The position numbers and the translations under genes are program-made. From Klebsormidium nitens (taxonomy: Eukaryota; Plantae; Klebsormidiophyceae), in the NCBI GenBank assembly GCA_000708835.1, contig DF237305.1, forward strand, positions 1-64,000: a DNA stretch of 64,000 nt. Direction: 5' to 3'. The notes under the pieces were generated by a model. It saw only the letters and a list, made by a program, of their open reading frames with translations. It was not told the origin of the DNA and searched no databases. Numbering within the stretch: position 1 is the stretch's first letter; each line of letters begins with the position of its first letter. This document shows, piece after piece, positions 4,840-57,447 of the stretch.

Positions 4840-6472
4840 GGACGCGTTTGACGTCTGCATGGTGTTCTAGATTGTCGTAGTCCCCATCGGCTCCACATGT
4901 GAAGCGGGAACTGGAAGGGAAGGCGAAGGTTTGTAAAAGTAGAAGCAAGGCTTTGGTTCTTTTCCAAAAGGTGGCTCAGAAGTTGCTAGGCACTTTCTTG
5001 ACGATGATTTCCGAATATGTGCTCTGGTCTCCTTGCAGGCATGTTATGAAGAGACTTCCGAGGCCGTCAATATCGGATAGGGCTGCCCCTTGAGTAGCTT
5101 CTCAGAGGCAAGAGACGAATGAAATGGTTCGGTTGAATGAATCTAGCGAGATGGCAACTCGAAAAGAGTTGTCGAGGACCAACTCTTAGAAAGCAGGTGC
5201 AGGGAGTGTCCATGCAATCTCGTGGGATCAGCGCAAGAGTGCTGGTTCAACAATACACGAGTATGTATTCACTTAACTTTATGTTACACCCTGGCGGATC
5301 CGAGTGTCGGCAGCTTGTGGAACTTCGGATAGTACATCAATAGTTGCGTACAGTGGTAAGGACTGTGTTGGGTACAGGGCCAGGCAGGAGGGAGCGCTTT
5401 CTGAACCTGTGAAAACTTGGAACACAACTGGAGTTGCTCTTGTTGGATACTGATATGTCCAAAGGAGAGACGCGTGTATTCAACGCCATGCATGATCAAC
5501 TCCTTTTATGAGGATTAAGTTTTAGAGTTCGAAGCCGCATGGGGTACATGTGCCGCAAGGGACAATCAAATGTTTCTGAGATCGTGGGTATGACGTGAGG
5601 CTGTTGTGACTTGTCCGATCGAACGTCGACGGTTGCATGATCGTGATTGGGAGGACAAGATGTATTTATGCTGTTGCTGCCAGTAGATTTTAAGCATGCA
5701 AATTACTGCGCAGTTCTAGACCGTAGCGTCGGTATGCATATGGTGTGTATTGAGACTTTCTATTATCCGATATATAAGCATTTTTGTTCTGCAAATATGA
5801 AGACATGCTGTGCAAACCTCACATGTGCTCATGCCCGCGGCCGCCCATGCGAAGCGTAGCTATATGGCTTATCTGACTATATCGCGAGCTTGAAAAGAGA
5901 TCGACTCATTATCCATCCGCACCGCAATTTTGTTCGCGGACTCACCGTCGCATGTTTGGACAAAGTCAAGATGCACATTGTCGCTCGGAGTCGTCTCGTG
6001 AGCGCTCATGCATGTCAGGATAACGTACTGATGTACTGAAAGTTTGCCATGGACGGTTCCTTTTCAAAGCTCAAGACTTGCCCTCTAGCAATATACAGCG
6101 ACACATGACGGCCGACCCGAAATCCTAGTGAGTCGCAAGCAAAGGAATGGGCAACTCGCCATGCGTGAAGAAAGACGTGGCCCACGTTCGTCCAGTAACG
6201 TACAGGCAATACATGCTTGCTCAAATCTGGCGCCTGACAGGCCGTGAACGTTTTCAGAATATACACAATTCAAGCCAGCTGAGCTGACTAGCGCAAGATA
6301 AAGTTGATCCCAGCAAGACAAAAACAGGCGCGGCAGTTCCTGTGGGCCATGTATCTGCTTCTGCAATGCTGCAAGGAGATTCAATTCAGAGAGTTCCAGA
6401 TCAGCACGCACGGTCAGTTCAGCGTACCGCACCCTACCCCTGTAGCTGCCATTTATTCCCCAGGGTGCCTTC

Positions 6473-9400
6473 TCAAAGGAGGGCAGCCACTTTCCCAAGT
6501 AATGGCTTCTCCCGTAGAGCCCTTTGGCTCGCCGGCTTGCAGCAGAGGGGGAAGCACGCGTCGGCTGCTCCATGGCCAACGAAGCCCACCACAAAGTCCG
6601 CGTCCTTCTCTAGTTGTTTCGCGTACGCCCTCACCTGCGCCTGCAAGATCGATCCGCTGACCCGTTACAAGCCAGCTTAGCAACAGAATATTGGACAATC
6701 AGAGTTTTTGGAGACCACAAGATACCACAACTTGATCATCCGCGAACAGTGGCATAAAGTTGTGCGAAATTTCTGAAAGAACCGTGGATTGCATTAACAG
6801 CTTGGGCTGTTCTCATGTTGGCCCACCGAAAGACGCATCGTGGCGGCGTTCTCCAAGTCCTTATGCTTTACTCTATTCTACGTTCCTCATGACCCCAAGA
6901 AGCAGACGAGCCGAAGGGTATCGCGCATGCGGAGACCAGAGCCGGCATCAATCTCACCTCGACGTCGCCCTTGGTGAGAGCGTCCCGGATGGCGGCCTCA
7001 TGCCCGTCCATCCAGAAGTCGGGTGCGTCTACGGGGACGACGCCCGGGAGGTAGCCAACCGAGCACTTGTGGGCGTCGAAGATCTGCTGCAGCCGCAATT
7101 CCAGAACGGCCTCCGCCTCGTTCCGCGTGCTGCCGTCGTACAGCGACTGTACAGGCAGCCCGGAACGGATGCTTCAATGTTGAAACAACTTATTTTCATG
7201 CCTATCTTTCATAGGATGCCTCATACCTAAACATTGAAGTAGTGCTTCCGTCGTACAGGGACTGTCCCTGTACAAAAAGTGCATGACGGAGGCTTTTAGT
7301 CGCACCTTTTCAGGGCCAGTCTGGCGCTTCCTAGCGGCCAGGAAGCGCACACACGCACCGGGGGGAAAGGGACTACGATGAAGCAGGTAATGTTTGGACG
7401 AAGCCGTCCCTCTCCGAAATCCTTTACAGGAGGGAGACGGAAACGGGGATGGTGTGACACCTTTCAGCCCAGCACCTGTCCTATGAGCGCTCTCGTCAGA
7501 AGAACTGCCAAGAACCTTCCAAAGTTGCGGAAGGAACGAACCGTTCTTAAGTTAGAGCGTTCAGGAGCGGAACCGCCACAATTCCCGCTCACAAGGCCGG
7601 AATGCTCCATTCTTACGTTAAGAGCTGCACACTCGTCTGCAGTTATCATCCCCCCTCGTCTCAAAATTGTCAACGACTTTGAAGCCAAAGGAGAGCGGCT
7701 CACCCGTACGAGCTCCTCCGTCGCCTGCAGCACCCAGGTCCCGATCGGCGTGACCACGAGGTGCACGTGGCCCCGGCCCCCCGGGCGGAGGTTGGATTCT
7801 CGGGCGACCCCCAGCAGGTCCGCAGTGGAGGGCAGATTGGGCCACGAGTCGGCCAAAATGGCGTGCGAGTGCCACGAGAAGGGGTCCTCTGCAACCTGGG
7901 GGGAGAAAACAAGCACCAAGCATCAGCGAAGAGCTCTTCTTGCTCGTTCTTGGCTCGGTGCAAACTTCCTTGTTTCACAGTCTGTTGTTTCAGCCATAAC
8001 AAACACTTGCGAGATCGGCTCTCTCTGGAGAAAAGGGTAACACCTAATCTTTTGGATTCTAAGAGCAGTAGTAGGTCTGGAAAACTCAAGCAGCAGAGCC
8101 GGAGAGGAGGTTTGGAAGTCGTCACAGAAGCACTGAGTGCAATCTGAGTCCGAACATGATCCACATTCTTTACAAGGAGCAGACTTGTTTATGGGGGACA
8201 CCTACAATGTCCTGAGAAGATGGTGAAGCCGTGGAAGCGCCTCAAGTTGCAACACAAGCCTACCAATCTGAGGGCAAGAGAACACTCAGGGAGCAGGTAC
8301 TTACAGAAGCAACCCTGTGGACTGAAGTGACCCCAATGCTAGAAACACAAGCAGCACGGAAGCTGAAGGCTCTCACAAGCCTTTGCTTACCTGCACGTGG
8401 TCATGTGAGCCTCGGCCGACGCGCGATGGCACAATCCCTAACAAGGCCTCCCCCTTGTTGCCAGTCCCGCGGTGCTTCAAAATGCCACCCCACTCACACT
8501 CCTGAAACGCGGCCGCACCACCAACTGCTTCCAGCAAATTAGCATAGAAAGTGCTGCCGTGCAGCCGCATGCGCTTCCACGTGGCGCCGTCCAATCTACT
8601 CCTCTCTAGCTCCGCTGCGCTCCACTCGCCAACGACGCAGCTAATTGTAGGAAGCGGGAGGCAGTCGGATGAGCTGTCGGAAATGCAGACGACCTCAGCA
8701 CCGTATTGCAACTTGCAAACGCTTGATGCTGGTTGTGGCAAAGCTGGCTCAATCTTGACTCCAGAGACCTTTCGTCTCTTAACACAGCGATCTCTGTCGC
8801 CGTTCCGAGCTGCGATTCCGAGAAGCTTTCGGGCAGTTGGTCTCGCACGCTTTGCCAGCCTTGCACTTTTCCGCACCTCCACGCACTGTCCTGCAGCCCC
8901 CAACTGCTGTCCCCCAATTCTTCCAACCTTGCAGCTGACGGCCGAGACTTCTTCCAAGGCCTCCACATCAATGACTTGCGTGCCCCAGTCCTCAGCTCCT
9001 ACTCCTTCCTCTCGAGCTTTGCCTAATTGAACCACCACTCCCGGGCCCCCTTCCACCAATTGCATTGGGACCTCAACACGCTTTACGGGTCGTTTGCTCA
9101 AACGCTCCCTCGTTTGACTGCCAAACTTGCGCCTCCTAGGACGGCCCTGCTGCCTCCGAGAGTCCATTCCTGTGACCTGCTTGTTGCCGTTCGTACTCTC
9201 TTTTCCCACTGCCGGCCGTCCTTCAACCGAGCAACTATTGGTCCCGCAGTTTGTCCGCGCTAAAGAAGCCCCTTTGCCGCCCTTCTTGACACCCAACCGC
9301 TTCTGCTGGCTGTGCTTGAGGCACATCGCTCTGTAGGGTTGCGCAAGAAAAGGGCACTGCCAGCCACTACCTGCGCGTCTGCTGCACTGACTCCCCTCCT

Positions 9401-9764
9401 GACTCCCCTCCCCGGCGGGGCACCCAGCTTTCTGCTGGCGGTCCGCAACGCTTGCTCCGTCCTCCAGCTTGCAAAAGACGACAACATGGGCCCCTTGGGC
9501 GCTCCCTAGATCTGCATGATCCTTCCTCTCAGTCGGCCTTCCCGAGGTTGTGGGCTCTTCAAACATGTCACTGAGCTTGCGAAGCCTTCGCCCCGGAAGG
9601 CCCTCAGAACCATTAGCCCGCACACGTTTCCTGGCCCGAGCCTCTGGGAAAGTGTTGAGGCCCACTGCTGGTGGATCTATGCAGGGAACGTTCTGCAGCC
9701 GCAGTTCCCGTCGGCTGGGGACATCCTCCGACTCAACCGCCTCACGAAACTTGTGGGCCAACAT
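6473..9764 (-). CDS. Putative nuclear protein: WRC zinc finger plus C-terminal JAB/MPN+-like metalloenzyme domain
   Basis: Exons 9764(ATG; exon may start near 9819)-8391, 7895-7704, 7146-6958 and 6640-6473 join through phase-0 GT-AG introns. WRC motif CSRRAGSGWQCPFLAQPYRAMCLKH (C-x9-C-x10-C-x2-H) at 9386-9312. JAB-like motifs: ECEWGGIL (8501-8478), FSWHSHAILADSWPNLPSTAD (HSH at 7871-7863) and HVHLVVTPIGTWVL. The 5' end may extend further upstream. Confidence 0.7.
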
Positions 9765-11731
9765 TTCAGACAGCTTTGAAGAATGACTAGCCGCGTGGCT
9801 TAACGTTGTAGTTTGTGACCTGGGAGAAGACAGAATGTGAGCTCAGTGAAGAAACTTAATCGACAAGACATCAAACAACATGTCTCTGTGTAAAGACTTT
9901 CTGATGGGAAGGAGGGACCCGGATACTAGTTTCTTCCAGGCGATAAAGCACTGGGCGGATCATAGCGAGACTGGGAACACAGCTCAGGGCGCGTAAGAAG
10001 CGATACCGCCCGTCAGAGTTTCTAATGTGCCCGGTCTTCTTGCCGAGAAATACCATCCGAAGCAACCAGACTTATGCAAACAGGTTCGAAGAATGTGGTG
10101 GAGGCAATCAACCAGAAGCCACTTGAAATGAACCTGACTTGAGTGGAACATATCATAGCTACAAGATAATGATAACGAGCTTTTATAACAGAGGGAATCT
10201 TAGCAGTCATTGTAGAACTCAGCGGGCCAACTTGTCTGTTGGCAACTGTGAGATGAGCGTTTGTGTCTGCAGAAGGAGATAAAGAAATCCCCATAGTGCT
10301 CTCGATGCAAGGGCACCACACTTATAATCCAGCTGCTTCATTAACCCTCGTGATCTGTCACCTAGTCACCTGGTCGCCCGGCCCGCCCGGATTTGCATTA
10401 CATGGGCGACAGTTTTATTTTGCAGCCACTCCTTCAAAAGACCAGTCGCCAACATTTCTTCTTCAAATGATGCACAGTTCTTTCTTCAAGCCACCCTAAT
10501 TTTGCAAAACCAAGTGCTTCAAGAGTCCAACGCCCACTTTGGGCAGTCTTACCTTGCGGGATGAGCAACCCCATCACTTGGGGATTGTCACCAACTACTG
10601 GCGGCAGAGATTGCATGGAAAAGCACTGTCGGGGAATCCAGGTGCCACTGATGCGTCCACGCTGCCTTGTGCTGCATAAGTCTAAGTCTAGAAATGTCTG
10701 GAGGTGCAATGGTACGAGAGCATTCAGGGCAACGTGCCAACTTCATCTACAGAGCTGCTATACTCAAGCGATCCACCACCCTGCAATGCACTTTAGCTTG
10801 TCGTGCCCCCGGTTGTGCCTTGTTATGCTAACAGACTTTATCTACAGCGCCCTAGAACCATTGAGGCCGGAGAAGGCAGACTGCAGACCTGTATTTCAAG
10901 GTGATGATAAAAGAGAGATGCGGATCAGTGCATGGTGACCTAGGACCAGGTAGTAGGTACTTCGTGCTTCGAAGTTCGCAGCACCGCCCAAATGCTCAGG
11001 TCGATCAGGGATCCCCTCAAGTATTAACGTAACCCGCCTTGGTTAAGACGCCTTGGTTAAGCAGTCTACCTACCTATCTACTCCAGCGCCGAGGCCCGTA
11101 CTTGAATCCTAGCCAAATCTCCTTTGTGTGGGTTAAGGTAAACCACACTTTGCCCATTCAACAGTGGAAGTGCAGACGTTGCCGCGTTTGCTCGCGCGCA
11201 GGGCTAAATGTGGCCGGCAGTAGGGAGAAACAGAGAACAGTTTTGCATTTTGAAAGGCAACGTATGGCATAGTGCATGATGCAACAGATGAAATTCTGCA
11301 AAGGCCGAATTGCGAAGAGCAAAATGCCTTTGGCGTCAGAACAGCAGGTGCGAGCTGGAGCTCAGCAATCATGGGGCAATTCTTGATTGATCAGCTCAGA
11401 TTTGCCAGACACCTGCGTCACCCTAAAGCAGTGTAGCACAACGAGGACCGCAAGACATTGCAAAAGCCTAAGTTAGTGAGGCCTGCAATCTACTGGGCTA
11501 ATGTGAACAGCGGATTGGTAACCCCGTCAACGTCACTGATGTTCCTTCAAATGGCACAATGGGGGAGAAATGTAGTGCAATACATGTTGACTGAGACCGA
11601 CAACCTGCCGGGCTGCCAGCTGGTAGGCAGCTGGAGGGCTGCATCTATTGACGGGCCGCTGAACGTGACAACATCAAACTTGATGCAATTAATATAAAGA
11701 CCTAGCGTTCGACAGGGCCAGCTAGCAGGCG

Positions 11732-25079: not shown

Positions 25080-28000
25080 CTACTTCAGCAAGGTTCTCAC
25101 AATCTGCTTCACGTTGAGCTTGGTGAGATCGGTGTAGGTCTGGCCACAACCGACGAACATGATGGGGGCGGATGAGACGTACACCATGGACAGCGCTGCC
25201 CCGACCTACAGCACAAGTCACACTCAATTAATCAGATGTACGGAATATATGCGAAGGTCTGCAGGCTCAGAAACCACAGACAGCCACGTTCTATTGCTTT
25301 CCATACTGATGTGAACAGGAGACTCACCGACTACAAACCTACTTCACTCTACTTCGTTGGACTCGAGTTCCCATCATACAAAATGACTTCGAAAACCCGT
25401 GCCGACAGACGAAAGTCCAAATTGACCTCCAAGCCGAAACAAATCATTGCAATCCCTGGCGCACGAGCTGGTCACATACACTAATGCAAAATGACAGTCT
25501 GCCATGAGTTCCAGGTAACCCGTCCCTGTGGTCGAGATCTTCAAAGATCTTATTGACAACCTGAATCCTGGGCATAGTCGCCTCGACGGATTGATTCGGT
25601 CTATTCAAAGCATAACAGCCAAGATAAAGGCATAATCTGGAAGGAGATAACCGGAATCACAGTTCCCTTGCACAGTCTTATGCTCGTAGCAACACAAGCC
25701 CGTCTCTCACCTTGTCATCGATGGTGTCGAACTTGGTGAGCAGGATGCCGTCGATGAGGCGCGGCGCGCTGCCAACCGAGAGGTCCGCGAGGCGCTGGTT
25801 GAACTTCATGAGCTGGTCCACGCCGTCGTTGCCCACGAGCGCCTCCCCCACAAACAGCACCAGGTCCGGCTGGTTCTGGTTGATCAGCTTAGACAGCGAC
25901 CGCATCAGCGGCTCGTTGTCCTGCATGCGCCCCGCCGTGTCCACCAGCACGACGTCGCGCTTCTCGCGCGCCGCCGCACGGATTGCATCGGCGGCCACCG
26001 CGGCAGGGTCCTTCTCGTAGCCGCGCTCGAACAGGGGGATCTGAAAGCATGCAGGCGGAAGGGGAATGAGAGGACTGTTTAGGGGATCACGAGCATGAGG
26101 CGAACCTCGAGTTTGTCAAAGACCTTTTGCTGACGCAGACAGTATGAATAAGGATAGGACAACTGCTTTGCAATAGTTTGATCCCCCATCAAGGATCGGA
26201 GAACGGGTGTGGCTACCCAACCCTGCACCTCCATTGCTTCGCCCGGCCTTCTATGACAAAGGCCTTCATTTCGTCGTTTGAACCTGAGATGACCAACAAA
26301 CTGAGGCACTGTTGATGAACCCCGACCGTTTGGAGGCTGCTTTAAGTAATACAATGGCAGTACAACGACAACCCCTACTCTGATGTCTGACATTCAATGG
26401 AAAGCGGGGAAACACATCTGACAACGATTCCACATGGTAGTCAACGTAGCAGTAACCCTTACATTCAGCCTGCGGCAGTGTGTCTTGAGCTGCTCCACTG
26501 CACCCGAACGGAAAGTATCACACGCAGCAATCATGACATTGATGTCATGCTGCAGGAGCCAATACGCGACCTGCACAGGGGAAGTTGTTCAAAAGAATCA
26601 GAGAAAGGACACATGGCCTGGATGACGCCTCAATCTTTCTGGACAGCAACGGTTTATTCAAACTCGTTTGCAAGAGTTGCGCCCCAGGCAGCCCGCATCC
26701 CATCGATCATCAGAGGAAGTAGGTGGATCTTGTCCAAGAAAGATGCTGCCTGCCCTGCTCGGACCGCAGCTGCGGCCTCACCTTGGACAGGTTGGTGGAC
26801 TTTCCGACCCCATTCACTCCCACAAAGACCACTGTGTAGGGACGCCCAGCCTCCTTGGCAGCATGCACATCCCGCAGGATGTCAATGGACCGCTTTGGGG
26901 TCAGGATCCGCAGCAAAGCCTCCTCCATGGCGGCCTGCACAAAGACACACCCGCTTAGCGCCCTTACAAAATTCCAAAACCTCGTGCACCATGCTACAGA
27001 ATCAAAAGGCTGATATCTTTTCTTGTCTGCGTCAATGGCAAAAATGTCTGCTTTTTCTCAGCACAAATCATAAGCTGACGTTGAGTTCAATGTGAGGTAC
27101 TCTCTAGAAACAGTCGAGTCTGATGTGAAGTAGACCAAAGCCTCCAGAGAGCAGCACAAACACAAACTTACCTTAACAGTCGACGAGACCAGAGAGAATG
27201 AGGCCTGCTTGCGGCCCACAATGCTGGTGGCAACCGACTCGCAGAGCTTCTCCGCAATCTCCTCAGCGACATTCTTGGTCATGAGGCGCTCCTTGAGAGC
27301 TTTCAGAGCCGGCTCCAAGTCCTCCTTCTCCAGAGCTGCCTTCCCAGCCACACTGCAGAGGGCGCACAAATTCAGTCCTCCTGGAACAACAGACGCCAAG
27401 CAGCCTCTATCAAGACAGGGCGGCCAACATTCCTTGGCCTAGCTCTCGTGACAAGAATCTTCCATGTGTGCAAGTGTTAGCAGGGATGAGCCCTGGAGGT
27501 CCTAAGGAACACGAAAGCAGCTTTGCATGCTGATTGCAAAGATGCTGCACGATGTGCAACTCGGCGACTCACCTTTGGAAAACTGATGCAAACCAGCCCT
27601 TCTTAGCAGGAGTCTTGGTGGTGGCAGTGACGGTGCCGTTTGACACTTCGTTCAGCTGTTCCTCCTCCTCCCCCTCCTCCTCATCATCGTCAAGATCCTC
27701 CTCAACATCCATGCGGCTCTTCCCACCGCCACTCACATCGATTGCGTCAATTACCTCGCTCTCAGTTCCCTCTGAATAATCCAGCTTCCTGTTGGGATCA
27801 GGGGTGTCGTCCCACACCCTTTTTCCCCGCGTACCCTTCTTGCCGCTGTCCGCCGCCGAGTCGCTGCCGAGCTTCTTGCCATCCGCAGGTTTGAGGGGGT
27901 CAGCCTTCTTGGTGCTAGGCCCCTTTCCCTTCCGCTTCTGGAGCTTGGACAGGTCAAAGGCAGTGGCTCCGTTTGCCCCATTGCTGACTGTCCCCACACT

Positions 28001-28712
28001 CTCTTCTTCGCTACTGTTGCCTCTACTATCGTCGGACTTGACTGCCTGGACCCCTAATTTGTTTTTCTCAGCTGCTGAGGAGCTGTCATCGTCGTCGCTC
28101 TCCTTTTCTTGTTTGCCTCCAGACGTTTTGTTCCCTCCCGTCTTTCCCGTTTGCTTCAGCTTATCCTTCCCCTTCTTGGTGTTCTCAAACTTGGTTATCT
28201 GCTTTGATCGTCGACTCTCCTCAGCCCGGGTCTCCGCTGCTTGAAGCATCCGCTGAAACTTGTCATCGAACCCCTTGTAGGAATACTTGCCCTCCTTGTA
28301 GGTTGGTGCAAACTCTGCTTTTACTGCAGCCAGGAGCTCCTCCACGTACAGCAACTGCAGAAGGTAACCTGGTCAGATCTCTGATTTATGAAGCACGCCA
28401 TGAAAGCTGTCCCAAGCAAAAGAATAACGAGAATAGCAAGCATGAAATAAACTGTGAGATCCATACAAGCTGCTGAAAGGAGCTCACCTGTAAGATCCGC
28501 TGGTATACTGCCACGAAGACCAGACCCAATTCATTGTGGAAGGTCCACTTGAGGGTGTACTCTCCTTGCGAGAAAGATGTTTCGCCTGAGCGCTCCTCCA
28601 GCAGGCACGACCGGATGAGCGAATCAACCGGATTCCCCTTCAGAGCGGAGGTCAGCTGGAAAGTCCACAGGACCAGGCCCCCCCGGGTGAAGATAGAAAA
28701 GTGGTCCAACAT
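25080..28712 (-). CDS. SRPRA: Signal recognition particle receptor alpha subunit (longin domain plus SRP GTPase)
   Basis: [16 protein letters not shown] (N-terminal longin domain), a charged linker, [16 protein letters not shown] (G1), [37 protein letters not shown], and last exon [31 protein letters not shown]-stop. Confidence 0.95.
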
Positions 28713-32343: not shown

Positions 32344-35034
32344 ATGGATCGATTTGAGTGGCTGCGGGGCCAGTGCTGGCTGACCCCTTGGCCCGCTACC
32401 CCGCACGTGCCTCAGACTTCCAGGTCTGCCATAGACTGGGTATTCAGGGGAACGGCTTCATTCCACGTTAGCCAACAGGAGCAGTACGGCGGCTCCGGTG
32501 TGCACGATGACAGGGGACCTCTGACGCCTAACGCCCGACATCTCTTCTTCAAAACGGGACCGAAGTGCCACGACCCAACTGAGACAGTGAGTAATCTTGC
32601 TTGGCTGTTTGAGGGATTGACCGTGCTTCTCGAACCTCGACGAATATATTTGGGTACTTTGCCACAGCTTTCCGACAGTAGGTCCTCGTCTGCGTTGTTT
32701 GAGTCATTACGTCTTAAGTCGCGTCAGCGTTTCGAGGGACTTTCAAGCTCCTGCACGGCGTTGCAATTGATGCAGTGCGCGTCACACTCGGAGGGAGGAC
32801 CAGGAGTTTCCTTTTGCGCAGGCCTGCTGCGTGGGTGTTGTTCAACACTCCGCCAACGACTTGCGGCTGGTCTTCTGCCTGGCAGATCAAGACGTTTGGG
32901 AAATCGAAGCTTCTCAGGTGACCTGACACACAATCCACACCTGAAAAGTCGGATCTGCCAAAACGTCGGGAGGTTTTTGACGGCAAGTCGAGGCTGTAGT
33001 GGTCGAGGATTACGTCAAAGGTCATATTCCTTCCGACGCCTGCTAATTCTCGAGTCCTCAACCGCAAGACTGACTGGGGCTTGCTCCTCAAATGGTCAAT
33101 CCATAGTCCGTGCTCTTTCGAGCAAAGGGCAGATTCTTCGGAGTAAATCGGAACTTGTGCTGGAAAAATGGCTTCTCACTGCTGTTTTACTTTCACAGGT
33201 GCAACGGCTTGTGCTACAGGACAGTGAAGCCGAGGTCCGTCAAGAGAGGCCTGGAAAGTAGGCATCTTTGCATGGACAACCGTCTTATCTTGGCGCCCAC
33301 GTTTGCAGACAGTCGAGTTACTCTGCAGAAAGGTTGCCTTCCGCTTTTGCGGGTGTTTCTGGAACTCTTGGAACCCTTCTGGCGCCCTAGACTAGCGTAC
33401 AACGGCGTTGGTTCCACTTGTAATATCTCTCATCGAGGCGAAACGCTTTTAAATCTTTGGACTCTCTTCTTCGAAGCAAGTACGCGCTCGTACATATCCA
33501 GAACGCGAATAGAGCAAGTGTCCCCGTGTTTAAATGGAGCGTGCTCATTGGCCAAAAGCCCCGCAATATGAGTTTCCTTACTTTCTTGTCTATCTAAAGG
33601 ATCCATTGAGGCCTCTTTCTGCAAGCGCTCAGGACAAAGTCTGACAAGTCTCGCCCTTACTTCCAGGCTGCCGGCTGTCTTGAGCGTCATCTTCCGCCAC
33701 GTCGTCCTTAATCTCTACCTTTCGTCGCCCACAATCGCAGCAGAGGCGCCGCAGGTGCTCTCCAGGTTAGCGGCGCCCTGACCCCCGTCAAGGGTCAGGG
33801 GTGTCTTTCTAGATCGCTCGAAGTCTCAGCACCTTCTAAAGTGCTCGCAATTACTGCGGTGCTGTCGGCCATGTTATCCGCTGCGAGCTGAAGTTTGTTG
33901 TCCTTCGCAGGGTGGCGGACCTTCTCTCTCGAGCTTTAAAGAATGACAGCTCTGTGAGACTCACGTCAGGTAAGCAACGGGCAGCTCGAGCGGATCTGTG
34001 GCGCGTTCGATACTGTCTGAACGCTTCCCTCGTCAGATGCTGGTTCTTCACCGGCCCTGTTGATTGAATAGTCAGTCTGTTCCTTGCAGGAGGCGAGGCA
34101 GGAGCGCCACAGATGGCACGACCAGAGGAGCTTGCATGCAACTGGCTGCGCTCTGCCGACGAGCTGGCCGCCAGTGCCCGGAGTACCAGCAACGCCTTGG
34201 CAGCCACCGAGATCGTCGAGGGGGCGCTGACAGCGATGGTGAGCACAACTGCTTCTGGGGCCTTGCCGACCCGGGGAAAGAAGTCCCTGCACGACAGTAG
34301 CGTAGATGGCCAGGGTCCGTGCCGTTTACTTGCGAATGCGAAATTCTGAAGCATGGCTGCAGACGAGAAAAGCTCGGGGCTTTGACAGGGATGAACAACT
34401 GCGCCAAACGCATAGGTGGATTGCCCCAACATCAGGTCTCAACTTTCAGCTCGTCTCCTGCAGGCAGCCGCTGCTGTGACACGGGAAAAGGTTCGAGCAG
34501 CCGCAGGGAGTGTGCACAGAAAGTATCCGGTCAGCACGGATGCTGAGGAGGTGAGATGGTCATTGGGCACCCCGCTCTGATGCCATCTCATGTCGACCGC
34601 CAGATTCCCCGAGAAAAAAGCAACGGCATGCAAAGAGCTTTTGCATGCGTTGGCGACACGGCCTTCAATTGACTTTGAAGTGTGAAATGAGGAAAGCAAA
34701 CGTTGCCGGCTCCTTGTCCTTCCTCAGGAGGTCGTAAGGTGGATGCTGGAGAACCGTGGAAAGCACGAGGGAACGGCTACTGACGTGACTGCCAAGTTGC
34801 AAGCCCTCCTCCAAGAAGTGAGTTCTCAAGCTTCTTACGGATTCCAGTCACAAGCATTGAATGAAATATACGTGCCCTATTTCTGTGAAGCAATTGGATA
34901 TCAACCGTCCCTGCGATTCTGTTGCGTGCTGTAAACTGCAGAGGGCGGCGAAAAGCAACGCTGTGATCAAACCATTCAATCGTTGCCTAGCCTCAAACAC
35001 AACTTCTGTGTGTGCAGCAAAAGAAGCAGTATGA
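32344..35034 (+). CDS. Uncharacterised multi-exon protein (no family recognised)
   Basis: ATG in GCCGCCATGG context. About ten phase-compatible exons with GT-AG edges read e.g. ACCVGVVQHSANDLRLVFCLADQDVWEIEASQ / WSRITSKVIFLPTP..TDWGLLLKW / LPAVLSVIFRHVVLNLYL / EVVRWMLENRGK, with TGA at 35032-35034. One donor site (about 33397) is uncertain. Confidence 0.5.
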
Positions 35035-53921: not shown

Positions 53922-54772
53922 TGCAACTGCTGCCGTGCTAGCCCGAGCGGGTGCTGCACCATACCATAGCTCCTCAAAGGGCAACTCCGCTACTTCCTCA
54001 TCGCTTACCTTGGGCTGGTGTGATGCATGAGCGGACGCATTCTCAGGCCTCACAGGCGGCCGCGGCTCAAACTCAGAGACCACGGAGAAATCCACGATGT
54101 GAGGAGGGGGGTGCAATGCCTGGGACACTCAAGTGCATGAGTGCAAAGCCCGGGAAACTGAGGTGCCTGGGTTCAAAGCTGGTAAACTCTTGTCACCACC
54201 GACAAGCAATTTTGCAGTCATGCAGCACCCACAAAAAGCTTCATCCAACACTGAGTAGCCACATGGCACACAGCACATGCCTGCATTCAGCGGGACTCAA
54301 CCACAAGCTCTGTCATATGGTGCGCCCAAGGACTAATGTAAGCTGGCTGGCAAGGAGAGATCAGAAAAACCCCACTGTTGATGTCAGAAGAAGGGCCAGC
54401 CATGGGCAGCGTCAGCGTTTTCCCAGCCCTTGCAGAAGCTCGAGCCTCAACTTCAAGGTGCAAATTGGCTCCGTCTCTTCTCAGCCGGCCGGCATGCTGG
54501 ACGGGGTATTCTACCGGGTAGCATGCCCGCCAGCTCTCAGGACCGCTTTCCAGCGCGACTTGGCTAACAAGAAATTCTTAGTCTCAACCGGGGAAATAAA
54601 CCGGTGCTACCAACCTGGTCCGGTGGTAGAAGACGAAACGTCGCGGTTGGATTTGAGGGAGTTCACACGGTGCTCATCCATCTTCGAGACACTTTGCTAT
54701 GCAGGAGCCTGCTTGGCATTGGCAAGAGTTCAACCTTTCATTGTCAAATTCCAACCTCAGACCTCTCCCTCA

Positions 54773-57447
54773 ATGGCGGCTGCTACCAGGCTCCTCTTTG
54801 AAGCCAGCTTTTTACCTTCAACTGGGACTTTCAGCGGAGGGGCTGGACACCGAGAAGATGCAGTCCGGCAGAACGACGGGAACCTTGCAGCAGAGCGCGT
54901 TGGGTGTTCTCACCACCGATGGCACCACCTTAACCCAAAGCCGATTCTAAGAGAGCCCACCGAATGTGGTGGCAGCAGACGGTATGTATGTGGATTGCCA
55001 GGTGGTCAAATTCATGGGCGCCACCGGCGACGTAATTTGGTGGTGGGAGTTTCCCACATGGCGTACCCATCATCAGACAATGAGCGGTCGACCAGCTCCA
55101 GCCTGACGGAGACGTCTGGACAGGTCCTCTTTCAGCGGCATCGCCCCAAGACAAAGTTCCAGTATGCATCTTCACTAGAGCAATTGGGTCTGGCGAGACT
55201 CTCCTCAACGGAGTCTCGAGAAGCGGCAGTGGCGATGGGCATCGAAGAGGTTGGGGATCAGGAGACGCCTGTCTGCATTGGCTTCACTGTTACCAAAGTG
55301 AGGGATTCGCACTGCCATGGTCATCTAATTCTGGCAGCCGGTGGTGCCCCGGTTTCTGCTTCGAATGGACTGGTTCGGAGGTCTTTGCAAACGCTCCTTC
55401 GGATGTCTGGGCACCTGATTGAGGGTGGTTATGTGTTTTGTTTGCACCTGGCCAGTGAAACTCATCCAAGCTCTTTAATATTGTATGCTTGCACTTTGTG
55501 GTCCTTTGACCCTTGAGTCATGAAAAGTTGCACACCTGCCGAGTGGTCATCTCCTGAAAGGGTTCACCTTCGACCACCATCTATCGCGACTGCTCGACGT
55601 TTTCAAGAAGACCTCTGAGTAGATTCTGAAGAGATTGAAGGACTCGTAGGAGCAGACTGGAAGAGTTACTTCTTTTGGAGTTGAAAGCAGTTGAGCAGCC
55701 CTCGTCAACCAACTAGTATGCTTGGGTCTCGACAGAGGTTTATGAAAGTACCCGCGAAGACGCAACGCCTACGGCTGGGAACTGCGATCCCTGCATTCAA
55801 ACGCTTTCCCCAGTGTCAATGTAGGAAGGAAGAGGAGACCTCAGGCTGGAAGGTGCAGCAGATACCGCGCTGATCGTGCCCTGTGCCAGGTAAGGCAATT
55901 CTCTTCCTTCAAACATGGTCTCAGATTTTCCTCTTTCAAAAAGCTGGTGTGGGAGCACATCGCTGGAATTGGTTCACATCGTTGGTTGGGGATCAACTAT
56001 CGAGAATGCATTCGAAAATCCTTATCTCTAGAGAATGGAGAACAAGATACTGTGAACAGTTTAGAACCTGTTTTCCAAAATGAAAGCTGCATTTCTGTTG
56101 GTTGAGAAAGTAGGCTATACATCGGGCTGCAGGTGTGCATGTTCAGTCGGTGTGCCCATCGAGGGTCCGTTCAACCTGCTACTAACTGCAAAACCGCTGA
56201 GAGTGGTGGGCCGCACTGTAGTTGGTATAGTGCGTGGGCGCAAGGATCAGGAGCTGGAGGACCTGGAGGAGGCAGAGGCAATGGCGGGGGCGCTAGACGA
56301 CGAGGCGTATGACCTGGACCTCGACGACAAGAAGTACTTCCCTCCAGAGTAAGCACCATGCGCTTCTCTTGAGAGGATGCACAATTTTTAACATTGCCGT
56401 GGATGAGGGCGTTCTTGACTTCGTGCGTAGTAGACGCGCTCATTTAAATTCAAAGGTCGAAACGAACTATCCTTTTCTACTGAAGCCTCTTCCGTTGACT
56501 TCCTGTTGGGGAGGATGCTCAGAAGGACTGCTCGATCTTGATCCTGGAACAACTGCCTGAAAGTTCACACTTGTCACTTTATGATTGCAGGGCAGCCGAA
56601 ATTGATCTATCGGAGTACATCAGACAGACAATTCTTCTCAAAGTGCCAATCAGGGTAAGACGTCTGCACCGTTAATCCACCTGCACGAAATCTGTAACCC
56701 CCCCGTTGGTCGACTCTGACGATGAATAAGTTGGTGGCAGCTTGGACCTTGGGAGATTTTAACCTGGAGCTGCCATGATGCGACAAGTCTCCCCATCTGA
56801 TTTTATTGGATCGTTCAGCTTCGGGTGCTTTTCAAAGAACTTTAAAGCTGGCATGCAGGACTCAATGATGCACTGTGCAAGATTCTCGGAAGTTTCGCTT
56901 CGAAGATTTCAACCTTGTCCCTTGGCCTATAGCACGTCGTACACCAGTTGCACCTCGAGTGCGTTGGACGAGCTCGTTTGAAAGATGACCGGACAACCTT
57001 TGCTTACTCAGCATCCGATTTTGAATGTCGCAAAGACAAACTTGATAGGGAAGGCCTTTTGATTCGGAATGTAATGTCTTTGCTTCCCAGGTTCTGTGCA
57101 AGGAGGACTGCAAGGGGCTGTGCATAGATTGTGGGGCAGATTGGAACAAGCAAAGTTGCTCTTGTGGTAAGTGTTACAACTCCTCAGTACATCGTTCTTT
57201 TGCTCCCTTGCCACTATATCTTCATTTGGCATTGACCATGGCTATCTAGCGGACTTCGGCTCATTGACCATGGCTAGTCAGCGGACTTCCGCTCATTGGA
57301 CTTGCGAAGGTTTATAGTGAAATTTCTTTCAACTCTCGGTTTGCCTTTGCAGCTCAAAAGAAGAAACTCAACAACACGGGGGCTCCTAAAACCAACTGGG
57401 GGTCGGACCTTGCGCAGCTCCGAGATCGATTACGGAAGGAAAGCTAG
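54773..57447 (+). CDS. DUF177/YceD family protein (plant DUF177A-like, plastid large-subunit rRNA accumulation)
   Basis: Exon 1 (to 55297) has a transit-peptide-like start MAAATRLL and QVLFQR..YASSLEQLGLARLSS..AVAMG..TPVCIGFTVTK. Later exons give DLRLEG..LIVPCARC (CxxC), PFNLLLT, DDKKYFPPE, EIDLSEYIR, VLCKEDCKGLCIDCGADWNKQSCSC and stop at 57447. Confidence 0.88.
57230..57293. repeat. Two-copy 32-bp tandem repeat in a DUF177 intron
   Basis: CATTGACCATGGCTATCTAGCGGACTTCGGCT followed by CATTGACCATGGCTAGTCAGCGGACTTCCGCT. Confidence 0.85.

Follow-up and report, generated by a model that had tools for sequence, protein, structure and literature searches.

Enzymes of the JAB/MPN+ (JAMM) superfamily share the catalytic signature E ... 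H-x-H-x7-S-x2-D. Those of proven activity are mostly peptidases that act on ubiquitin (Ub) or ubiquitin-like proteins (Ubl) (reviewed in PMC3482391). The Tox-JAB-2 (DUF4329) proteins are defined by the residues E, H[ST]H, S, and D, and occur in phage OP1 as well as in iridoviruses, mimiviruses, and algal viruses (Zhang et al. 2012, PMC3482391). Such divergent JABs, of the Tox-JAB-2 and RadC types, have been argued to lack the Ubl-tail tunnel and to be possible nucleases, not Ubl peptidases (PMC3482391); no experimental test of the nuclease idea was found in the literature searched. The window analyzed here, positions 1 to 64,000 of contig DF237305.1 (64,000 nucleotides) from the streptophyte alga Klebsormidium nitens, contains on its minus strand, at 6473-9764, a gene with four coding exons. 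On balance, its 640-residue product, KFL_003560020, is best read as a WRC zinc finger joined to a divergent JAB-like module, encoded by an expressed host gene. A first-pass annotation of the sequence had proposed this fusion as novel. The WRC/GRF evolution literature searched describes no architecture that joins WRC to JAB; the JAB identity lacks support from sequence profiles. The fusion of WRC finger and JAB-like module is probably specific to this lineage. Public annotation covers the WRC part only (NCBI, 'hypothetical protein KFL_003560020 [Klebsormidium nitens]'; UniRef, 'WRC domain-containing protein').

Both parts lie on one mRNA. The spliced translation equals the database protein (P0001) exactly over all 640 residues. 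Transcript evidence consists of Logan contigs from four RNA runs, each belonging to a different study, placed on positions 6200-10100. The three coding joints (6639/6957, 7146/7704, and 7893/8389) occur in all four runs; two contigs of 2566 and 2594 nucleotides, from two runs of independent studies, each cross all four exons; and word depth is 22-95 in exons and 0-6 in introns. The first-pass annotation had placed a clean phase-0 intron at 8390-7896, between the two halves of the putative enzyme domain. It is used in every run, and exon 1 does splice to exon 2; the introns at 7703-7147 and 6957-6641 are seen likewise. All three coding introns are GT..AG and phase 0.

These data leave virtually no room for the explanation that the architecture is an annotation artefact, in which two genes or alternative transcripts have been merged. 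The only support found for it comes from intron-retaining contigs, which are present at low depth. Against it stand single contigs through four exons, exact GT..AG borders, an exonic depth 10-20 times the intronic, and an exon layout conserved in two other genomes; the RNA contigs exclude it. The elements that make up the fusion are as follows:

8391-9819, minus strand: exon 1, defined by open reading frame (ORF) and translation, by RNA contigs covering 8389-9821, and by its match to the database protein; coding from the ATG at 9764 to 8391 (residues 1-458)
9312-9386, minus strand: WRC-type zinc finger C127-x9-C137-x10-C148-x2-H151; Pfam PF08879 match at residues 123-156, with the Cys/His pattern conserved
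8391-8573, minus strand: first half of the JAB-like core, residues 398-458; structure alignments in the ESM Atlas begin at residue 398
8495-8493, minus strand: candidate catalytic glutamate E424, in C-E-W-G-G-I-L; invariant in orthologues
7896-8390, minus strand: intron 1, phase 0, GT..AG; joint in four of four runs
7704-7895, minus strand: exon 2, residues 459-522, second half of the JAB-like core plus the HLVVTPIGTW strand pair; from translation, orthologue identity, and the ratio of nonsynonymous to synonymous substitution rates (dN/dS)
7871-7869, 7865-7863, 7829-7827, and 7820-7818, minus strand: exon 2 motif residues H467, H469, S481, and D484, respectively, from translation

Exon 1 encodes the WRC finger between an N-terminus of low conservation and a basic, low-complexity linker, followed by the beginning of the C-terminal module (its first half).

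Comparison with relatives shows where the constraint lies. An exhaustive phmmer search with residues 360-640 against 1.84 billion representative proteins (E<=1e-3) returned six entries, all of them Klebsormidium-type, exon-sized fragments from two other genomes; a word-indexed profile search added nothing beyond these. Genes rebuilt from contigs, L003 (Logan SRR23617307) and L001/L002 (SRR14092358/60, also JGI metagenome contig L176), have a four-exon layout identical to that in K. nitens. The window and L003 are collinear over ~12 kb (15.8 kb to 4.0 kb in the window), and the L003 gene is hence a true orthologue from a sister species. So far, the gene is known only from the Klebsormidium lineage, as judged by these searches. 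The linker (residues 161-360) is only 44% identical to L003 and 24% identical to L001, with dN/dS 0.60 over residues 161-384 between K. nitens and L003. Exon 2 (residues 459-522) is 92% and 80% identical, respectively, and dN/dS across the JAB-like core (residues 398-522) is 0.145 for the K. nitens–L003 pair. The C-terminal module (residues ~385-628, ~240 residues) is the best conserved part of the protein, and on this comparative evidence is its selected, functional heart.

This module contains the motifs that first suggested a metalloenzyme: E422-C-E424-W-G-G; W-H467-S-H469-x11-S481-x2-D484; and H-L-V-V-T-P-I-G-T-W. All are invariant in the three orthologues except E422, which varies. The five residue types of the JAMM signature (E424, H467, H469, S481, and D484) are present and in the right order, with the H-to-S spacer lengthened as the first-pass annotation had remarked. 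The motifs can be lined up with those of phage OP1 ORF24 as E-x2-G-x-[IL], 40-43 residues, [FW]-H-[ST]-H, W-x-N, and A-D-L; the distance from E to HxH is 43 residues here and 40 in the phage protein.

OP1 ORF24 (L166 20486-20857, minus strand) itself scores 23.3 bits on Pfam DUF4329, for which the cut-off is 28.6. In this protein N replaces S before A-D-L, and the HxH-to-D loop is one residue longer, deviations that indicate variation of both loop length and Ser within the Tox-JAB-2 clade.

A separate observation concerns the core's own sequence. Residues 428-460 and 470-503 (~8483-8385 and 7862-7761) look alike, with the common pattern I-L...A-L-L-G-[IV]...G-R-G-x-H-x-x-V, and the likeness made MAFFT place exon-1 fragments on exon 2. 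It may reflect chance or an old internal repeat inside the JAB-like core.

Evidence for the fold comes from the ESM Atlas, which holds KFL_003560020. By features, the nearest clusters to residues 380-640 are unnamed ones from Nucleocytoviricota (216-235 residues; score 0.93; 182-184 of 256 features shared), and the named clusters are Prok-JAB (44 matches), DUF4329 (24), Toxin-JAB1, and RadC, with scores of 0.78-0.85. Predicted structure puts giant-virus clusters of 255-313 residues first, at template modeling (TM) scores of 0.53-0.63, with DUF4329 and RadC after them; the best giant-virus neighbours of the whole module reach TM 0.63-0.68. The core alone (residues 398-522) gives TM scores of 0.71-0.76 with giant-virus clusters, 0.64 over 107 residues with DUF4329, 0.62/0.51 with the Prok-JAB cluster named 'Mov34/MPN/PAD-1', and 0.56/0.55 with RadC. 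Among the core's ten best Atlas matches, every one with a Pfam label belongs to a single family or clan, the JAB clan. In the secondary-structure strings from AlphaFold2, although these are of low confidence, a strand finishes in W-H-S-H, the following helix opens with P-S-T-A-D, and a beta hairpin (HLVVTP / GTWVLQ) comes next, the same order as in JAB. Together, motif, conservation, and language-model-based structure form the basis of the interpretation, and make it quite likely that the core (residues ~398-522) adopts a JAB fold. Kinship of the module with the giant-virus clusters is, on the same models, fairly probable.

The WRC finger at the other end of the protein was described in the first-pass annotation as having exact spacing, with a Trp before the second Cys, at 9386-9312. 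All ligands were found there: C127 (9386-9384), C137, C148, and H151 (9314-9312), with W135 two residues before C137. The spacing C-x9-C-x10-C-x2-H recurs in all three orthologues, in which the G-W-[QH]-C-P core is conserved and the flanks are not. Pfam PF08879 matches at the equivalent place in each (K. nitens, 19.1 bits, E=1.1e-3; the other two, 26.6 bits, E=4.8e-6, and 17.7 bits, E=2.8e-3). The finger is accepted as a divergent WRC, a reasonable but weak assignment, and is likely to be the nuclear- or DNA-targeting part of the protein. The basic patches resembling nuclear localization signals (GRPRRRK, residues 207-213; KRRK, residues 329-332) and the SUMO-consensus site (VKIE, residues 336-339) noted in the first pass are indeed present; none is conserved in the orthologues, and for that reason they are given no weight.

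Several results weigh against reading the protein as a WRC finger plus divergent JAB. The WRC scores of all three orthologues fall below the Pfam gathering score of 28.6 bits. For the C-terminal module, sequence searches with residues 370-640 gave no match in Pfam, NCBIfam, PADLOC, PHROGs, or PDB even at E<=10 (in the Pfam scan, neither PF01398 [JAB] nor Prok-JAB nor PF14220), and the only relatives that phmmer found were the Klebsormidium-type fragments. Comparisons by hhalign and hmmsearch with a RadC profile (71 sequences, seeded with E. coli YeeS relatives) and a DUF4329-like profile of the phage OP1 ORF24 family (11 sequences; weak DUF4329 match, E=6.4e-5) were all non-significant. The best of them, with the OP1 family (Prob 0.45%, P=0.13), aligned the HxH strands and W-x-N, pairing F-S-W-H-S-H...S-W-P-N with Y-I-F-H-T-H...G-W-A-N of OP1. 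(Lambda K was dropped as a Prok-JAB seed: 80 of 80 loci were >=97% identical and held the domain end only.) The H-to-S spacer has 11 residues versus the canonical 7. AlphaFold2, run with a shallow alignment of three genomes, produced no usable model (mean confidence as predicted local distance difference test [pLDDT], 35.9 for residues 372-640 and 32.8 for residues 385-530), and Foldseek of the 372-640 model against the PDB gave ribosomal-protein noise only, which was disregarded. Finally, Atlas feature scores below 0.9 are a lead only by the tool's own calibration, and the named JAB clusters all lie below; the feature and structure evidence, moreover, come from one language-model family. No sequence method assigns the module to any family. 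Neither the protein nor the exon-2 and exon-3 alignments picked up relatives when used to scan IMG/VR and JGI metagenomes, an IMG/VR scan with the OP1-family alignment recovered only Xanthomonas-type phages and no giant-virus versions, and tblastn against phage genomes gave only noise.

These negatives are the strength of the proposal that the module is not a JAB at all, but a lineage-specific fold, new or otherwise different, that is shared with giant viruses and in which E...HxH...S..D is coincidental or forms another kind of metal site. Every sequence- and profile-based test is negative, the spacer is non-canonical, AlphaFold2 yields nothing usable, and the Atlas evidence derives from predicted models (overall pLDDT 0.46 for this protein). 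Yet the named Atlas neighbours belong consistently to a single clan, whether judged by features or, separately, by structure; the predicted secondary-structure elements place the motif residues where a JAB would have them; and H[ST]H together with giant-virus occurrence fits the published description of Tox-JAB-2 (PMC3482391). A non-JAB fold is accordingly judged improbable. The opposite proposal, that the C-terminal domain is a JAMM isopeptidase of canonical type, recruited by the WRC finger as a nuclear deubiquitinase or deSUMOylase acting on histones or transcription factors, draws on conservation of the full E / HxH / S / D set, on the mostly Ub/Ubl peptidase activities proven for JABs (PMC3482391), and on the Mov34/MPN/PAD-1 cluster among the structural neighbours. 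It is unlikely: neither Pfam JAB (PF01398) nor Prok-JAB matches; the VKIE SUMO site is unconserved; and the closest of the named neighbours, DUF4329, Toxin-JAB1, and RadC, are argued to lack the Ubl-tail tunnel (PMC3482391). The first-pass annotation had compared the module with divergent viral or bacterial JABs and not with Rpn11/CSN5. The Atlas neighbours and the published account of Tox-JAB-2 agree, while the profile tests remain non-significant; the same division applies to the JAB/MPN+-like assignment as a whole, for which motif and Atlas neighbours speak and hidden Markov model and profile-profile significance does not. The nearest relatives appear, from the predicted structures, to be Tox-JAB-2/DUF4329-type proteins and unnamed giant-virus proteins, and not the Rpn11/CSN5 deubiquitinases.

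If the module is a divergent JAB, analogy with solved JAMM enzymes provides a mechanism. H467, H469, and D484 would hold a zinc ion; E424 would activate a water molecule; and S481 would support the transition state, with the H-to-S loop four residues over the canonical length. Zinc binding, activity, and substrate are predictions of this analogy, and the fold is one that we infer from language-model-based models only. The leading candidate substrate, though it falls a little short of an even chance, is chromatin-associated nucleic acid or another non-ubiquitin target; a ubiquitin-like isopeptide bond is a serious contender but somewhat less likely, and something else altogether is an outside chance. 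The slight lean toward a nucleic-acid or non-ubiquitin target follows from the Tox-JAB-2/RadC-like neighbourhood and the putative DNA-binding partner.

The remainder of the gene brings the total to four introns, including one in the 5' untranslated region (UTR), and the 3' UTR reaches at least position 6204:

10553-10807, minus strand: 5' untranslated exon, ~255 nucleotides in contigs of four of four runs (loose end, 10555 onward); 5' limit approximate
9820-10552, minus strand: 5' UTR intron, GT..AG, from RNA contigs; splices 10553 to 9819
7147-7703, minus strand: intron 2, from the RNA joint
6958-7146, minus strand: exon 3, residues 523-585, a mostly helical C-terminal extension with HKCSVGYLP and PDFWM conserved; from translation, RNA, and orthologues
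6641-6957, minus strand: intron 3, phase 0, from the RNA joint
6473-6640, minus strand: coding part of exon 4, residues 586-640 plus the stop at 6475-6473, with conserved VVGF-x-GHGAA; from translation, RNA, and orthologues

The 5' UTR exon contains an upstream ORF (M-Q-H-K-A-A-W...) in the frame of the main ORF. It ends 30 codons before the main ATG, with no ATG between; because of this in-frame upstream stop, the annotated start is sound. The upstream ORF (10553-10807, minus strand) may regulate translation. Intron 2 contains, at ~7245-7268 on the minus strand and ~120 nucleotides upstream of the real acceptor, a near-copy (22 of 24 nucleotides) of the intron 2 / exon 3 acceptor junction: ACAG followed by TC[CG]CTGTACGACGG[AC]AGCAC. 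A possible GT donor after it would define a potential mini-exon of 14 codons; none of the RNA contigs from the four runs uses this acceptor.

The surroundings are those of an ordinary host chromosome. Exons for mTOR occupy ~36.8-48.7 kb on the minus strand (ORF fragments matching the mTOR domain, E=7e-36, and the PI3/PI4-kinase domain, E=1.7e-23), and the N-terminal domain of the signal recognition particle (SRP) receptor alpha subunit is encoded at 27569-28354, minus strand (E=1e-21); by these domain matches, both genes are ordinary host neighbours. (An SRP54-domain gene lies 8 kb upstream in contig L176; in the window the SRP-receptor gene lies at 27.5-28.3 kb.) Two long ORFs, at 53951-55516 (plus strand; 521 residues) and 32344-33261 (plus strand; 305 residues), have no Pfam match at E<=1e-3. 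An endogenous giant-virus insert was considered and is ruled out: the neighbours are host genes, and the locus is transcribed, interrupted by introns, and syntenic with that of the sister species.

A viral source for the module itself is nevertheless plausible, since K. nitens (formerly K. flaccidum) carries phycodnavirus-like core genes (PMC5294986). Any such transfer would, from the orthologues, predate the split of the three genomes compared. One can imagine that a Klebsormidium ancestor took a Tox-JAB-2-like module from a giant virus and fused it to a plant-specific WRC finger, creating a chromatin- or DNA-targeted zinc hydrolase, either a nuclease or an isopeptidase of unconventional type, with no land-plant counterpart, possibly for genome surveillance or antiviral defence. 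This scenario is speculative, and as a whole is doubtful.

Should the module prove to be an active hydrolase of the JAB type, it would be the first enzyme of its superfamily seen to be delivered by a WRC finger. A streptophyte alga would then be maintaining by purifying selection a domain with no detectable relatives outside giant viruses. Moreover, the Tox-JAB-2/RadC-like branch, which is poorly understood and might act as peptidases or as nucleases, would gain an expressed and tractable member from a eukaryote, and there would be one more data point on gene flow, from virus to host or host to virus, around the time when land plants arose. Its scope is narrow: one algal lineage, one copy, and no known phenotype.

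Comparison with described systems sets KFL_003560020 apart from each in a different way. It resembles the WRC (PF08879) proteins, including GRF, in its streptophyte host, in the basic surroundings of the finger, and in the exact C-x9-C-x10-C-x2-H spacing with W-x-C; its differences are the lack of a QLQ domain, a sub-gathering score, and a JAB-like partner domain. The absence of QLQ means that it is not a GRF. With Rpn11, CSN5, AMSH, and BRCC36 it shares the types and order of catalytic residues, whereas PF01398 does not match, the H-to-S spacing differs, and the Atlas neighbours are from prokaryotic and viral clades. The RadC-like and Prok-JAB proteins (PF04002, PF14464; E. coli YeeS) resemble it in predicted structure, and its P-S-x-A-D recalls the end of RadC H-N-H-P-S-G-x4-P-S-K-A-D, but the 71-sequence profile does not match and the spacer is 11 here versus 7 there.

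The two closest comparisons are with Tox-JAB-2 and with giant viruses. Tox-JAB-2/DUF4329 (PF14220) shares E, H[ST]H, S, and D, represented here by E424, H467-S468-H469 (the H[ST]H being invariant), S481, and D484. It differs in that no Pfam or profile match connects the two, and in that the K. nitens protein has a longer HxH-S..D loop and a helical C-terminal extension of ~100 residues; furthermore, the domain here is not the tip of a secreted toxin accompanied by an immunity gene, but part of an intracellular WRC fusion encoded by an intron-containing eukaryotic gene. The Nucleocytoviricota proteins of the Atlas clusters (195-313 residues) stand alone, without WRC, and neither phmmer (E<=1e-3) nor the IMG/VR scans connect them to the module by sequence. 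They are nonetheless the best neighbours of the ~230-residue module, and the likeness spans the core and most of the extension.

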